Assembly: GCA_033442325.1 (NCBI GenBank)
Contig: JAWQFM010000010.1
Location: 230,930 to 294,929 of the forward strand
DNA: 64,000 nucleotides
Origin: Salpingoeca rosetta
Taxonomy: Eukaryota > Protista > Choanoflagellata
Reading direction: 5' to 3'
Below, piece by piece: positions 58,601-63,920 of the stretch. The notes beneath the pieces are model-generated. The model was not told the DNA's origin, made no database searches, and worked only from the letters and a program-made list of their open reading frames with translations. Each line of letters starts with the position of its first letter. The stretch's first letter is position 1. The position numbers and the translations under genes are program-made.

Positions 58601-61600
58601 TGGCGCCGCACACGCCATCGCTGCCCATCACAAACTGGCAGCTGTCGCCACAGAAACCGGATGTGCAGCTGCACACGCGCGTGGTGCCGTTGTAGCTGGT
58701 GCAGTTGCCACCGTTCATGCACCCGTCCAGCAGACACACGTTGATAAAGTCGCACACGGAGTCAACGACACCATCGCACGAGCCCGCGCCCTGACGCCGC
58801 ACCTGCGTCACAGGATCGCATTCCGTGCAATTTGCGCACACCTGATCCGACACGCTAGTTGCGTTCTCGTAGATGTACTCGCGGCCAACGACGCACTGGG
58901 TGATGGGGGCACACGCGCGGTTGCTCGTGGGTGTGGGCGCCATTTGCTCGTACTCCATCCCAGGCATGCACGTGTCCACAGCAAACACCTGCCCGCCAGT
59001 CACATAGTACCCGTCGTCCGCTTGCCTATGATACGTGTGCGTGTGATGGAGTGTGTGTGTGTGTGTGTGTGTGTGTGTGTGTGTGATTGTGTGTGGGGGG
59101 AGGGGAGTGTTAGCCGGGAGGAGAAACGTTGTGTATGTGTGTGCAGTGGTCGTGGCAGCAAGTAGCACTCAAGATGTAGCAAACACAAACACACGACCAC
59201 CACATGACCTCACCACACGCAATAACGTGTGCACTCATACAGCCAAACAAACAACGAGTCAACCAGCCAACCAGCCAACCAGCCAACCAGCCAACCAAGC
59301 AACCAAACAAAATGCATGACTGCACGCTGCTTTGACGTACAGGCAGAGGATGGGCGGAACGGCGTTTGCAGTGTTGGCGGTGCACGCAATGCAGTTGGAG
59401 GGGCACGCAGTGCATGTCTTCGTCGCAGTGTCACTGAAGTAGCCGGTCGGGCACGTGCCCACAGGGGTGCACGTGTTGTTCCAAGGGCGAAGCGAAAACC
59501 CAGCCACGCACTCGGCGCACTCGTCACTCGCCGGGCCAAAGCATTGCATGCACTGGCAACGATCAAAGACGGAGAATGTGGGGCAGGGGAAAAGGGTTGA
59601 CGTGGATGAGACACACTGTGCAGATGGTGGTCAATGTGGCACCAAAACAAGAAGCACCACCGGCGGAGAAATAACACGATTCTCACAGTGCCAGCCATGC
59701 CCACACGCACGCAAACGCACACGCAACCGTGTGTGCAGACATACACAGTCACGCGAATTATCACATGAAACTCACACGCGAACGAGCAACGATACCTGTG
59801 TGTGGCAGCTTTCGCAAGCGTTTGTTGTGGCGTTGGCGAAGAAGTTGTCACCGCAGCCGGGGACACACCGCGAGTCCTTGAGATACAACGCGCCCTCACA
59901 CGCCGCGCACTCGCTTGCAGTTGGGCCCGTGCACGCTGCGCAGTCTGAATGGCAGGGGCGGCACGACCACGTGTTGGAGTAGAACCCATCTGGGCAGGTT
60001 TCACCGACTGCGAGGCACGCCCCCTCGTGCAGCAGCGTGTTGTTTGGGCAGCGCTGGCAGTCGTCAATGTCGGGGCCCCAGCACCGGTCTGGCCGGCACA
60101 GGGGGTGGCAGGTGGAGTCTGTTTTGAGGGCACACGGCATGCGCAGGATGTGATATGCACATGAATGTGTGCTGTGAATGAGGCTTTTGTTGCTTGCACG
60201 AAATAGTACAGCGCAGACAAGCATACCGCACGGCAGTATGCCATACGCCCACAACGTTAGTATTTTGCACACACAGACACAGACACACACAGACACACAC
60301 ACACACACAGACACACACACACACAGACACACAGACACGCACGCACAATCGTACCCACCGCATGCCGGGTGCTCCTTTGGAAACGAGTCGTGAGTGGTCA
60401 CGAAGTCGTCTGTGTACGAGAGCGGGTTGAAGGTGAAGCCAAACGTGGCGGCCGGCACGGGGTCGGGTGACACAGAGGTCACCCCAAGCTCCTCCCAGTC
60501 GATGGTGGAGTAGTAGAAGCACAGGTTGGGGTTGCCAGAAAACTGTCGGCAAGGCGGTGAATGGAGCCAGGTGAGGTGTGAGGTGTGGCAATGGCCACGT
60601 GGGAGCTTGGTAGTTTGTTGATACGCAATGCACGGTCGTCCGCATTGCTGCGCTTGGGGTCTTCAACACATGATTGCGACGCACAGACAGACAGAGAGAC
60701 AGACAGATACACACACACACACAGACAGACAGACACACACGCGCGCGCACCCGCGCAAAGCACATCATACCGAGACAGAAGGAACGTAGCGCAGCGACGC
60801 GAGAGGAGCAGTACGAAGCAGTGGACTCAGAACCAAAACCAGTCCAAAGTCAACACCACTTGGGCGTGCACCATCCTGCGAACGTTGTTGCACAACAATG
60901 ATTGTGCGTGATTGTGTGCAATTGTGCGTGGATATGTGTGTGTGTGTGTGTGATGAAAGCGGCTGCAACAAGGTGCCGTGCCATGCCATGCTAGGCAGGG
61001 TCCACCACCGACGTTGTCGATGGCGAAGGTCATGAGCAACAGTCGCACGTGACATGGCAAAGTGGTACGTACTCGGGCCTCAATGTACTCGACAGATCGC
61101 AGCACGTTGAGCGACGTGAAGGGCGCAAATGTCAGCTGCACCGACCCCAAGATACGTCTAGACAGTATGCCAACGAGAAAGGGGTAAGGCAGGGGATGAA
61201 AAAAGGAGCGAGAAAAGGGATGCAATTGAGAAAACACACAGGAACAAGCAGTGGGTAAGGCTGAGCAGTGTGGAGTTGTGTCACATCGGTGGCATCACAA
61301 CGCCATATAACAGATTAAGCACAGTGTTGGAGTGTTGGTGGATGGCACACACCTGATTCTGGACAGCACCTGCAGCTCTGCCTCTGTTGCGTATGCGAGG
61401 GCGTTTGGCGAGGAATCCTTCACAGCGATGATGCTGACGGTCACAACACGGTCGATGAACAGCGCAAAACGCGGAATGAGTTGAATCGACGAGGGGTAAA
61501 TGGGCAAACGCGCACGCACGTATTTTCGACACAGTTATGTATACATTGACACAATTATGCTCAGCACACGAATGGCTTTGGCTCTCACCTGCCGAGGAGG

Positions 61601-63920
61601 GTGTCGCAGTCTTCATCCTCAAGGTAGCGAAGTGTACAGCGATCAACAACATTGAAAACAGAGCGGCAAGCTGATGGAAGGGAGACAGAGTTGGGAGTGG
61701 GGACGCCAATCAAGGCAGAACACGAGAAAGGAGGTGAGATGAGGTTTGCTGACAACAACAGTCATGCACATGCACACACACACACAAGCACACACACACA
61801 CACACACGCACACACACACACACGCACACACACACACACACACACACACAGAGCCACAGGTTTCCACGCACATAACCACACACTCGCTCCACGCTTACGT
61901 TTGTAGGCGATTTCACCCTCTGCGAGGGGAATGCACTCATTTGTTGTTGCGTTTGGTTCACGCCCGCTGGCGCACACGTCGACGCACACGCCATCCTCAA
62001 GGGCAAGCGGGTCGTGCTGGTTGGCCTCGCAGTTGTCGTTGCAGTAAAAGTGACTGACGGTGCGGGTGATTGCGCGGTCGTCGTCACAGCCCTCCACCTG
62101 CTCGATGAAGAGGCCGGCAGGGTAGGAGCCTGTGGGACAGGACGAGTTGCCCATGTCCAGCACGCAAGTGCCGTTGCTTGTGATGAGATACCCATCCGCA
62201 CAAGCATGGCACAGGGTGACACCATTGTCATCTGTGCAGCCGCCAAAGCACTCCGCAGGACAGCAGGTGCCGGGCGACGTGTCGAAGCAGCCAGCGGTGC
62301 CGCAGTCTTGGCTGCACACGACCTGGCAGTCACCCGCATCGGGGCCCCAGCACACCCCGTTGCAACTGGCGTGGCAGAATGGGGATGGGCAAAAGTCACC
62401 GTTGGCTGGAGGGTCCTGATTGTACTCGACAGTGGCCACGTCATCGCCGTTTGTCACTTCAAATTTCACCGGTGATGTGCCCACGCGCGAGGCTGTACCA
62501 GGGAGGAGGGCGGTGAGATTCACCCCTTCAAACCCTGCGTCGTCAACCCGGCCCTTGCCGCACATAATGGCAGAGTTTGGACGGAGGCCTTGAATATTGA
62601 TCCCGTACTTGCCCACCTGCGTGTATGCAAGCAAGGCAGTGTGTGTGTGTGTGTGTGTGTGTGTGTGTGTGTGTGTGTGTGTGTGTGTGTGTGTGTGTGT
62701 GTGTGTGTGTGTGTGTGTGTGTGTGTGTGTGTGTGTGTGTGTAAAAACGTATGTGAGCGTGCGGGACATGGCATACGCGTAGGTGCGAGCAGGTGTCAGT
62801 CAGCAGCCTTGGCAGATTCACAAGCACAGCCGTGGACGTGAACTTGTGCTGCTTTCCTGAACTGAAGGAACGCACCATCTGAAGGCGGGACAAGCCCAGG
62901 TGGCTTGGAGCCATGTCCGCTGGGTTGATGTACAACGCAACATCCGTTGCCGTATCTGTGTAAGCCGTCAATCCACGAATCACTCGCAAGTTGGCGAAGA
63001 AGCCCAGGTCGGACACGCAATCCCAGGATGGAGCATCGGAGAGTGCCACCTGAAGATGTGGCATTCCAGACGTCAGTCACGAGTTGTATCTTGGACCATT
63101 CACCAAACACAGGCACACACGGACGCACAGAAACTCGCATGCACACACAGGCGCACACAGGCACACGCACACACACACACACACACACACACACACACAC
63201 ACACACACACACACACACACACACACACACACACACACACACACACACAAACACAACTCACGGAGAGGAAGCCGCGGATTTCTCGGATGTTTCCGAAGAA
63301 CGAGGTGAGCTGAGCGTATGAGTATGTGTTGCACACCGTATTGAGAATGCTAATGGAACCGTCAAAGACCGTCACGTTGGACAAGGATTCCAGCACAGAT
63401 GGGAGAGTCTTGAAGTTCACGGTCAAGGTCGACCGGTCCCAGCCAACTGTACAGCAGCAGCAGGATATCAAGGTGAAGATCGGCGTGAGTGAGATTCACC
63501 GCACTGCCACACGCAACACAAGCACACACGGACACGCGGCATGACGCTGCTGGTGTGTGGTCAAAAGCAGAGAGAATCAACACACCTTGCACATCCAATG
63601 CGGTTGCAGCTTCCAAACAGGCAGGCAACAAGCAGCACACAGGTTGCGCAGGCGTGTGAGTGAGCGAGAGTGAGTGTGAGTGAGTGTGTGTGAGTGACAT
63701 TGTGTGCGTGAGTGAGTGAGTGAGTGAGTGAGTGAGTTGTGTGTGTTGTGTGTGTGTGAGTGTGAGAGTGTATGAGAGAGTGAGAGTGAGTGAGAGTGAG
63801 TGAGAGTGAGAGATAGTGAGTGTGTGTGTGTGTGTGTGTGTGAGAGAGAGTGTGTGTGTGTATGAATAAGTGCGTGATTGCAAGGGACTGGGAGAAAAAG
63901 GCACCTTGCCGGTTCACCAT
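55679..63920 (-). CDS. Receptor tyrosine kinase with EGFR/IR-type ectodomain (Receptor L + furin-like Cys-rich, twice), further Cys-rich repeats, EGF domain, TM and TK domain; 5' end unresolved or beyond the window
   Basis: Kinase: [80 protein letters not shown]: [23 protein letters not shown]: [29 protein letters not shown] domains: [36 protein letters not shown]. Furin-like: [39 protein letters not shown]. Confidence 0.93.
56313..56500. repeat. (GTGA)n/(TCAC)n microsatellite in an RTK intron
   Basis: Seen directly; similar tracts at ~51747-51815 and ~10640-10682. Confidence 0.9.

Follow-up and report, generated by a model that had tools for sequence, protein, structure and literature searches.

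At the upper end of the window, the 64,000-nucleotide stretch of Salpingoeca rosetta contig JAWQFM010000010.1 that was analysed here (positions 230,930 to 294,929 of the forward strand), lies a single large receptor gene. It is located on the minus strand and runs through 18 exons from 63700 to 55679, with a spliced product of about 1325 amino acids. The protein has the predicted layout of a receptor tyrosine kinase (RTK). From the N-terminus onwards, it comprises a signal peptide, a receptor L domain (L1), a cysteine-rich region (CR1), a second L domain (L2), a second cysteine-rich region (CR2), furin-like and TNFR-like cysteine repeats, an EGF-like module, a transmembrane helix, a kinase domain and a tail bearing tyrosines. 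The original prediction, made by reading the DNA, placed an EGFR-like receptor at 58690-63440. This range covers the ectodomain, and the whole gene extends from 55679 to about 63700. The peptide segments quoted in that prediction were all found on the minus strand, in the order given.

Transcription of the gene is visible in two stranded RNA-seq runs and two sets of RNA contigs, aligned over 58005-62638. Junction reads thus cover neither the exons of L1 and the 5' end nor those of the kinase downstream of 58005 on the minus strand. Eight GT-AG introns were obtained from the RNA (59026-59340, 59553-59795, 60119-60358, 60543-60770, 60876-61072, 61158-61352, 61434-61588 and 61671-61898). A ninth one, 62617-62875, is marked by a loose end of reads and contigs at 62617, which resumes at 62877 as placed by exact match. 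This brings the number of introns backed by stranded RNA-seq to nine. The first mate lies on the plus strand in almost all read pairs, which is expected for minus-strand RNA in most stranded libraries.

Two RNA contigs, 2981 and 3071 nt long, extend from 58275 in the kinase N-lobe through all of the ectodomain exons and continue for a further 439-529 nt upstream. Because single RNA contigs join both, the exons of the L domains and those of the kinase belong to one gene. The arrangement in which they would belong to two separate genes, which the original prediction had named as an outcome that would refute it, was rejected, as the contigs span both sets of exons within one transcript.

The RNA-backed exons and two inferred upstream exons form an open frame without stops. 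When the six kinase and tail exons predicted from GT-AG sites and homology are added, the frame reaches 1325 amino acids and ends with a TGA at 55679-55681. Translation probably starts at the ATG at 63700, the first in-frame ATG, which is followed by a weak signal-peptide-like stretch in the putative first coding exon (63586-63700, minus strand, residues 1-38). The GT donor and the reading phase of this exon fit. As the contigs reach that far upstream of 62617, they must include it. The region has a G+C content of about 55%, and (CA/GT)n and (CACT)n microsatellites abound in the introns throughout 55500-64000. The predicted N-terminus ([16 protein letters not shown], within 63586-63700) is itself encoded by (CACT)n-type repeat DNA, so its length may differ among strains.

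The domains of this gene were scored exon by exon, while the whole protein was approached via an orthologue from Barroeca monosierra (P0173) and hidden Markov models (HMMs) built from homologues. L1 (residues about 40-175; 62566-63444, minus strand) is encoded by exons 63446-63262 and 63049-62876 and by the start of exon 62616-61899. The junction 63262|63049 is predicted from the GT-AG sites and the reading phase. Against the Pfam Recep_L_domain profile, the two L1 exons score 14.4 bits (profile positions 3-36) and 16.1 bits (positions 43-71). The two matches are collinear. Each of them stays below the cut-off of 21.8 bits alone, and both together exceed it. An HMM made from the L1 domains of the homologues matches residues 68-168 of the spliced protein with 58.8 bits. 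The first L domain seen in the original prediction is thus recovered.

CR1 (residues 233-398; 61669-62394, minus strand) is the equivalent of ErbB domain II, on the basis of phmmer matches in the PDB and of an AlphaFold2 (AF2) model. In the phmmer search, the CR1 exon matched ErbB3, ErbB4 and Drosophila EGFR only, at the start of domain II (best match ErbB3, 1.5e-5); an EGFR domain II-like cysteine spacing had been noticed here in the original prediction. The AF2 model of the L1 tail and the CR1 exon has a predicted local distance difference test (pLDDT) score of 80. A long beta-hairpin is predicted at residues 164-194 of exon 3; the module around it is aligned with the one that bears the arm in LET-23, and the dimerisation arm of EGFR sits in this module too. 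From these models, neither an arm function of the hairpin nor a tether between domains II and IV can be read.

L2 (residues 399-535; 60483-61668, minus strand) is spread over exons 61670-61589, 61433-61353, 61157-61073, 60875-60771 and 60542-60359, and its four internal introns are all confirmed by RNA. None of these five small exons (26-61 codons) scores alone in Pfam, because they are too short. An HMM was therefore made solely from L2 domains that Pfam had verified in homologues, this gene being excluded. It matches residues 418-531 of the spliced protein with 66.2 bits, next to a cross-match of 19.3 bits to L1, and none of 2000 shuffled ectodomains rose above 5 bits. This result supports the second L domain of the original prediction. 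The orthologue P0173 passes Pfam Recep_L for L1 (45.7 bits) and for the segment aligned to L2 (48.9 bits).

CR2 (residues 576-684; 59796-60362, minus strand), equivalent to ErbB domain IV, consists of exon 60118-59796 and the end of the preceding exon. The CR2 exon scores 36.6 bits against Pfam GF_recep_IV, above the cut-off of 29.5, and its PDB matches are confined to the beginning of domain IV of EGFR and the other ErbBs (5.6e-6). This agrees with the domain IV-like furin repeats of the original prediction.

Sequence and structure comparisons of the complete unit point to the ErbB receptors. A profile of the family ectodomain, with the window's exons included, matched 127 PDB sequences, and the best 60 are all ErbB. 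The highest scores were found for LET-23 (1e-70) and Drosophila EGFR (2.5e-68), followed by ErbB4, ErbB3, EGFR and ErbB2, down to 6e-51. One uninterrupted stretch of the profile covers CR1-L2-CR2 of the ErbBs. As the best 60 are all ErbB, insulin-family receptors, if matched, score below about 177 bits. A single-sequence search of the PDB with the homologue P0007 found only ErbBs at E < 0.01, with no INSR or IGF1R. The AF2 model of the orthologue ectodomain (residues 20-720) has a mean pLDDT of 72, and the top 50 Foldseek matches of this predicted structure are ErbB ectodomains only, the best with an E-value of 4e-20 over about 700 aligned columns. No Pfam FnIII domain was found in any exon of the gene, nor in the orthologue. 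The L-CR unit alone does not discriminate between the ErbB and the insulin families; a CR2 after L2, combined with the lack of FnIII, does. Compared with the solved structures, the ectodomain thus has a likeness that is specific to ErbB.

Between CR2 and the transmembrane helix, about 220 residues (685-905) intervene. They start with furin-like repeats (residues 685-755) and a TNFR-like cysteine-rich region (residues 756-845), together at 58755-59552 on the minus strand. The Pfam matches in this stalk are weak (GF_recep_IV 13 bits, TNFR_c6 16.2 bits); its cysteines are regularly spaced, and the stalk is conserved in homologues. An EGF-like module follows (residues 846-886; 58632-58754, minus strand), about 20 residues ahead of the membrane. 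It matches positions 1-31 of the 32 of the Pfam EGF profile. The description of this module as a canonical EGF domain was too strong, because its score of 15.8 bits lies below the cut-off of 21.5; an EGF-like module is present. Its cysteine spacing is C4-C5-C9-C1-C8, with one extra cysteine and no GxRC. The homologous modules of P0015, P0167 and P0071 are above the Pfam cut-off. The single transmembrane helix (residues 906-928; 58506-58574, minus strand) corresponds to the sole long hydrophobic run in the protein. Exon 59025-58005 carries the EGF-like module, the transmembrane helix and the kinase N-lobe together.

The tyrosine kinase domain (residues 963-1232; 56231-58403, minus strand) is encoded by parts of exons 59025-58005 and 56278-56035 and by exons 57775-57686, 57494-57424, 57180-57108 and 56817-56689. 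The N-lobe exon scores 95.9 bits against Pfam PK_Tyr_Ser-Thr. The catalytic motifs are preserved ([15 protein letters not shown], WMAPE), and from its sequence the kinase is judged to be catalytically intact. The spliced kinase is 69% identical to that of the Barroeca orthologue. The junction within the activation loop is ambiguous: 57686|57494 gives a loop of 27 residues and 57678|57507 one of 34 residues, the latter having the better donor and acceptor consensus. Over 57424-57775, the former yields [14 protein letters not shown] and the latter [21 protein letters not shown]. Under both splice solutions, the loop has a single tyrosine (DMYEKK) and no YxxxYY. The tail (residues 1233-1325; 55679-56230, minus strand; last intron predicted) contains three tyrosines (AAYLDD, RPYLIP and LGYVEG) before the stop. 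The motif RPYLIP (56035-56230) resembles the pY-hydrophobic-x-P sites at which PLC-gamma-type SH2 domains dock on animal RTKs. The features of an RTK found here are thus one transmembrane helix, an intact kinase and an RNA link between ectodomain and kinase, along with a predicted signal peptide.

Within the kinase N-lobe, at 58005-58411, loose ends of RNA reads were seen at 58309 and 58411, as well as minority letters at 58374 (C>G) and 58383 (A>G). The RNA contigs break within the same interval at higher depth. The loose ends and minority letters may come from reads of a paralogous kinase or from an alternative isoform.

In the PDB, the kinase of the orthologue matches FGFR1 with 255 bits and RET with 246 bits, compared to about 145 bits per EGFR kinase domain, an estimate derived from a tandem EGFR construct that was matched in two stretches with 290.9 bits. 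For the window's N-lobe exon, FGFR4 comes first (139 residues aligned to 137). FGFR and RET are also the best named kinases in the database search, in which no ErbB or INSR was present among the best 120 matches. INSR and IGF1R are likewise absent from the best 60 PDB kinase matches. By these sequence comparisons, the kinase is FGFR/RET-like and not EGFR-like. In the kinase tree, the window's gene is sister to the Barroeca orthologue (99/93).

The gene is not isolated. A search of 1.84 billion representative sequences with the CR1 exon returned only 20 proteins, full-length RTKs among them, with identities of at most 45%. The full-length relatives each contain Recep_L twice, GF_recep_IV and a tyrosine kinase, and in two of them the Furin-like and EGF cut-offs are exceeded as well. 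They come from transcriptomes of Hartaetosiga balthica, Salpingoeca kvevrii, S. infusionum and Didymoeca costata and from a gene model of Barroeca monosierra, species which we take to span both choanoflagellate orders. The gene is thus a member of a family found across the choanoflagellates, in both orders. The Barroeca protein P0173 is 46% identical to our model over residues 24-1215, and the best match of its ectodomain in the genome of the window is this gene; by sequence, it looks like the orthologue. An alignment of seven family members has a common order of parts and a conserved cysteine framework, and the EGF-like module stands at the same position in six of the seven. A collinear paralogue (L001) is located outside the window, about 88 kb away on the same contig and strand (G000:C10:193500-203400, minus). 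By tblastn, residues 46-1218 of the model were matched there in order (L1, CR1, CR2, stalk, transmembrane helix and kinase), with 33-88% identity, and a Pfam Recep_L match is found at C10:201285-201476. The genome of the window (55.4 Mb, 68 contigs) also encodes an annotated S. rosetta kinase, recovered exon by exon with 91-98% identity, as expected for S. rosetta or a very close relative.

These observations are best summarized by an expressed choanoflagellate type I RTK that combines an ErbB four-domain unit with a cysteine-rich stalk and an FGFR/RET-like kinase, the four-domain module being homologous by descent to that of the animal receptors. We assign this reading a probability of roughly 80%. 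Homology by descent with the ErbB ectodomain explains the L-CR-L-CR module most simply. In the most economical scenario, the ancestor shared by all choanoflagellates also had this sensor on a tyrosine kinase. An outer half built like that of the EGF receptor, on a kinase of another type, suggests that the EGF-receptor-type sensor module is older than the animals. The gene is an ErbB-like ectodomain on a non-ErbB kinase; because its kinase is closest to FGFR and RET, it is not an ErbB orthologue as a whole. The original prediction of an ErbB-type receptor from before the animals holds for the ectodomain, present in the genome of a unicellular holozoan, and fails for the kinase.

Some of the results weigh against this reading. 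The gene model is predicted at the start codon, in the exons below 58005 and at the activation-loop junction, and the L2 and whole-ectodomain fold of this gene are predicted from homologues and a script. Of the Pfam domains that the original prediction proposed to look for, GF_recep_IV passes, Recep_L does so jointly over two exons and EGF stays below threshold; the CR1 exon has no Pfam match at all, Furin-like included, a profile of which the cut-off is passed by the homologues P0071 and P0167. Structure comparison came out in two ways: the four-domain model of the orthologue retrieves only ErbBs, and the model of the window's L1 tail and CR1 matches IGF1R/INSR and ErbB3 about equally in Foldseek, with IGF1R first. 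The TM-scores of the four-domain model are low (0.25-0.40), because the angles between the domains differ or are poorly predicted. The kinase tree contains no EGFR or INSR sequences and has no bearing on an affinity to either, and the family was not recovered in it as one clade.

The main rival is an independent origin, in which the L-CR-L-CR order would have been assembled within the choanoflagellates by shuffling and duplication, its ErbB likeness being convergent architecture. RTK ectodomains of unicellular holozoans are extensively shuffled (PMC4342544, PMC8662651), ErbB has another kinase partner, and the stalk contains additional repeats. L and furin-like modules are moreover promiscuous in this genome, which leaves some room for independent assembly: at least 11 Pfam Recep_L_domain loci were found in very different contexts, among them open frames of 2265 and 7387 amino acids. 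Convergence would, however, have to produce the uninterrupted alignment of CR1-L2-CR2 to LET-23, Drosophila EGFR and ErbB1-4 (1e-70 to 1e-51), with CR1 corresponding to domain II and CR2 to domain IV position-specifically. It would also require the same L-CR duplication twice, and the order is conserved in both choanoflagellate orders. We consider this origin unlikely, at around one chance in a handful. Less probable still is membership of, or orthology to, the insulin/IGF1 receptor family, whose shared part would be L1-CR-L2. The claim that L1-CR1-L2-CR2 defines ErbB receptors holds for the four-domain match, which is to ErbBs only, and has to be qualified for L1-CR-L2, which is also found in insulin-family receptors. 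The Foldseek result for the L1 tail and CR1, in which INSR is as good a match as ErbB3, would fit such a membership, as would the segment lengths of the kinase, which is of the long alphaD-alphaE type of INSR and FGFR and not of the EGFR type (classification in PMC8662651). It was also the tentative interpretation given by Fairclough et al. 2013 for their 'RTKS (InsR)*' family (PMC4054682). Against it stand GF_recep_IV after L2 in place of Pfam FnIII, the exclusively ErbB profile matches and the outcome of the P0007 search, the kinase matches to FGFR and RET rather than INSR, and an activation loop with one tyrosine rather than YxxxYY.

Whole-gene ErbB orthology, in which ectodomain and kinase alike would be those of a diverged true ErbB, is very improbable. 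It would account for an ectodomain that is ErbB-like by sequence and fold and for a single-pass receptor with a tyrosine kinase. The distance in score between FGFR1 or RET and EGFR, the lack of any ErbB among the best 120 kinase matches and the residues inserted between CR2 and the transmembrane helix argue against it. Common descent of the four-domain module, with a kinase partner other than that of the animal ErbBs, remains the preferred interpretation.

A further idea concerns the EGF-like module. ErbB ligands are EGF-fold domains, and it had been proposed that the juxtamembrane module is a tethered ligand or autoregulator of the receptor's own L1/L2 pocket. As a built-in ligand, it could be an autoinhibitor in cis or act in trans between neighbouring colony cells. 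If this were true, a single polypeptide would at first have contained both the receptor and its EGF-type ligand, and the two would have been separated later, in animals. The proposal draws on the presence of the module, and its retention in most of the aligned family members is in its favour. The consensus of ErbB ligands is C7-C4/5-C10-13-C1-C8-GxRC, from which the spacing in this module differs, also by the missing GxRC. About 310 residues, mostly rod-like repeats, separate the module from L2, and the family member P0007 has no such module. Juxtamembrane EGF modules are also common in unrelated choanoflagellate RTKs, with for instance five of them in RTKB2 (PMC3584944). A complex prediction of the orthologue's EGF-like module with L1-CR1-L2 had a score of 0.00, which is no answer and counts as evidence neither way. 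A role as ligand, in cis or in trans, appears highly doubtful.

By analogy with L-CR-L receptors and RTKs in general, a putative extracellular ligand would be bound by the faces of L1 and L2. Its binding would promote dimerisation of the receptor, possibly via the CR1 hairpin. The kinases would then trans-phosphorylate the tyrosine of the activation loop and those of the tail, and the phosphorylated tyrosines would recruit SH2 or PTB proteins. The cysteine-rich repeats and the EGF-like module would form a rigid stalk.

In comparison with the ErbB family, the gene shares the order L1-CR1-L2-CR2, the position-specific correspondence of both cysteine-rich regions and the layout of a receptor that crosses the membrane once and has its tyrosine kinase and a tyrosine-bearing tail on the cytoplasmic side. 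It differs in its FGFR/RET-like kinase, the EGFR-type kinase clade being without the long alphaD-alphaE insert (PMC8662651), in a 57-residue insert between L1 and CR1 and in its long stalk, whereas domain IV of the ErbBs adjoins the transmembrane helix. With the insulin and IGF1 receptors, it has in common an L1-CR-L2 head, the fold of the L1 tail and CR1 and the long alphaD-alphaE kinase segment; unlike them, it has CR2 after L2 and no FnIII, YxxxYY or sign of alpha/beta processing, and the profiles favour ErbB. The RTKB2 and RTKC8 receptors of Monosiga brevicollis also have cysteine-rich furin/TNFR-like regions, juxtamembrane EGF-like modules and an active metazoan-like kinase (PMC3584944, PMC10263333). 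Those families contain HYR, SCR or CAP-Gly domains and no L domains, and their ectodomains are described as having no relationship to the ones of animal RTKs.

More generally, unicellular holozoans are mostly held to have RTK ectodomains unrelated to the animal ones (PMC10263333, PMC4342544). Eph-like receptors are an exception, and an insulin-receptor-like family is tentatively another (PMC4054682). In the latter study, Fairclough et al. 2013 listed five 'RTKS (InsR)*' genes in S. rosetta and three in M. brevicollis, and their InterPro tables contain 'EGF receptor, L domain' in S. rosetta genes (PMC4054682). This family is a partial precedent. It likewise consists of choanoflagellate RTKs that partly resemble the ectodomain of an animal L-domain receptor, with several copies in S. 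rosetta, where we find at least two collinear paralogues. An affinity to the insulin receptor was proposed for it and no architecture was given, in contrast to the ErbB-type four-domain ectodomain found here (PMC4054682). The identifier of this gene was not found in the text and supplements of that study, which give counts of RTKS genes. Full-text literature searches brought up no account of a choanoflagellate ectodomain with the four domains of the ErbB type; an earlier mention by Manning 2008 or Suga 2012 is possible. The novelty is limited by the fact that the genome is already published, that InterPro L-domain annotations exist and that the function is predicted from sequence.

This gene and its choanoflagellate relatives carry a complete four-domain ErbB-type sensor on a different kinase. 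Should homology by descent hold for the ectodomain, the L-CR-L-CR ligand-binding unit, known from EGFR and in part from insulin receptors, predates the animals, and the animal ErbBs would have arisen by re-pairing this unit with another kinase. The ancestral ligand and mode of activation could then be tested in S. rosetta, which is a laboratory model.

Some searches were less specific. Word-indexed searches with the P0004 ectodomain and with alignment A1 retrieved PCSK5-type furin repeats and unrelated kinases and did not find this gene's own database protein. In a feature search with the P0004 ectodomain, ErbB-type clusters appeared at 0.75-0.78, under the level that counts. In a scan of the whole genome with Pfam Recep_L, the exons of this gene were not reached at E <= 1. 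Several of the Recep_L loci of the genome lie in very long intron-free open frames (2265, 7387 and 2367 amino acids), which suggests other L-domain proteins unrelated to RTKs. Two proteins from JGI metagenome contigs, P0163 and P0176, combine EGF-like domains with a tyrosine kinase. Because their kinases group with that of the Didymoeca L-domain RTK (100/100), uncultured relatives probably carry this receptor family as well.

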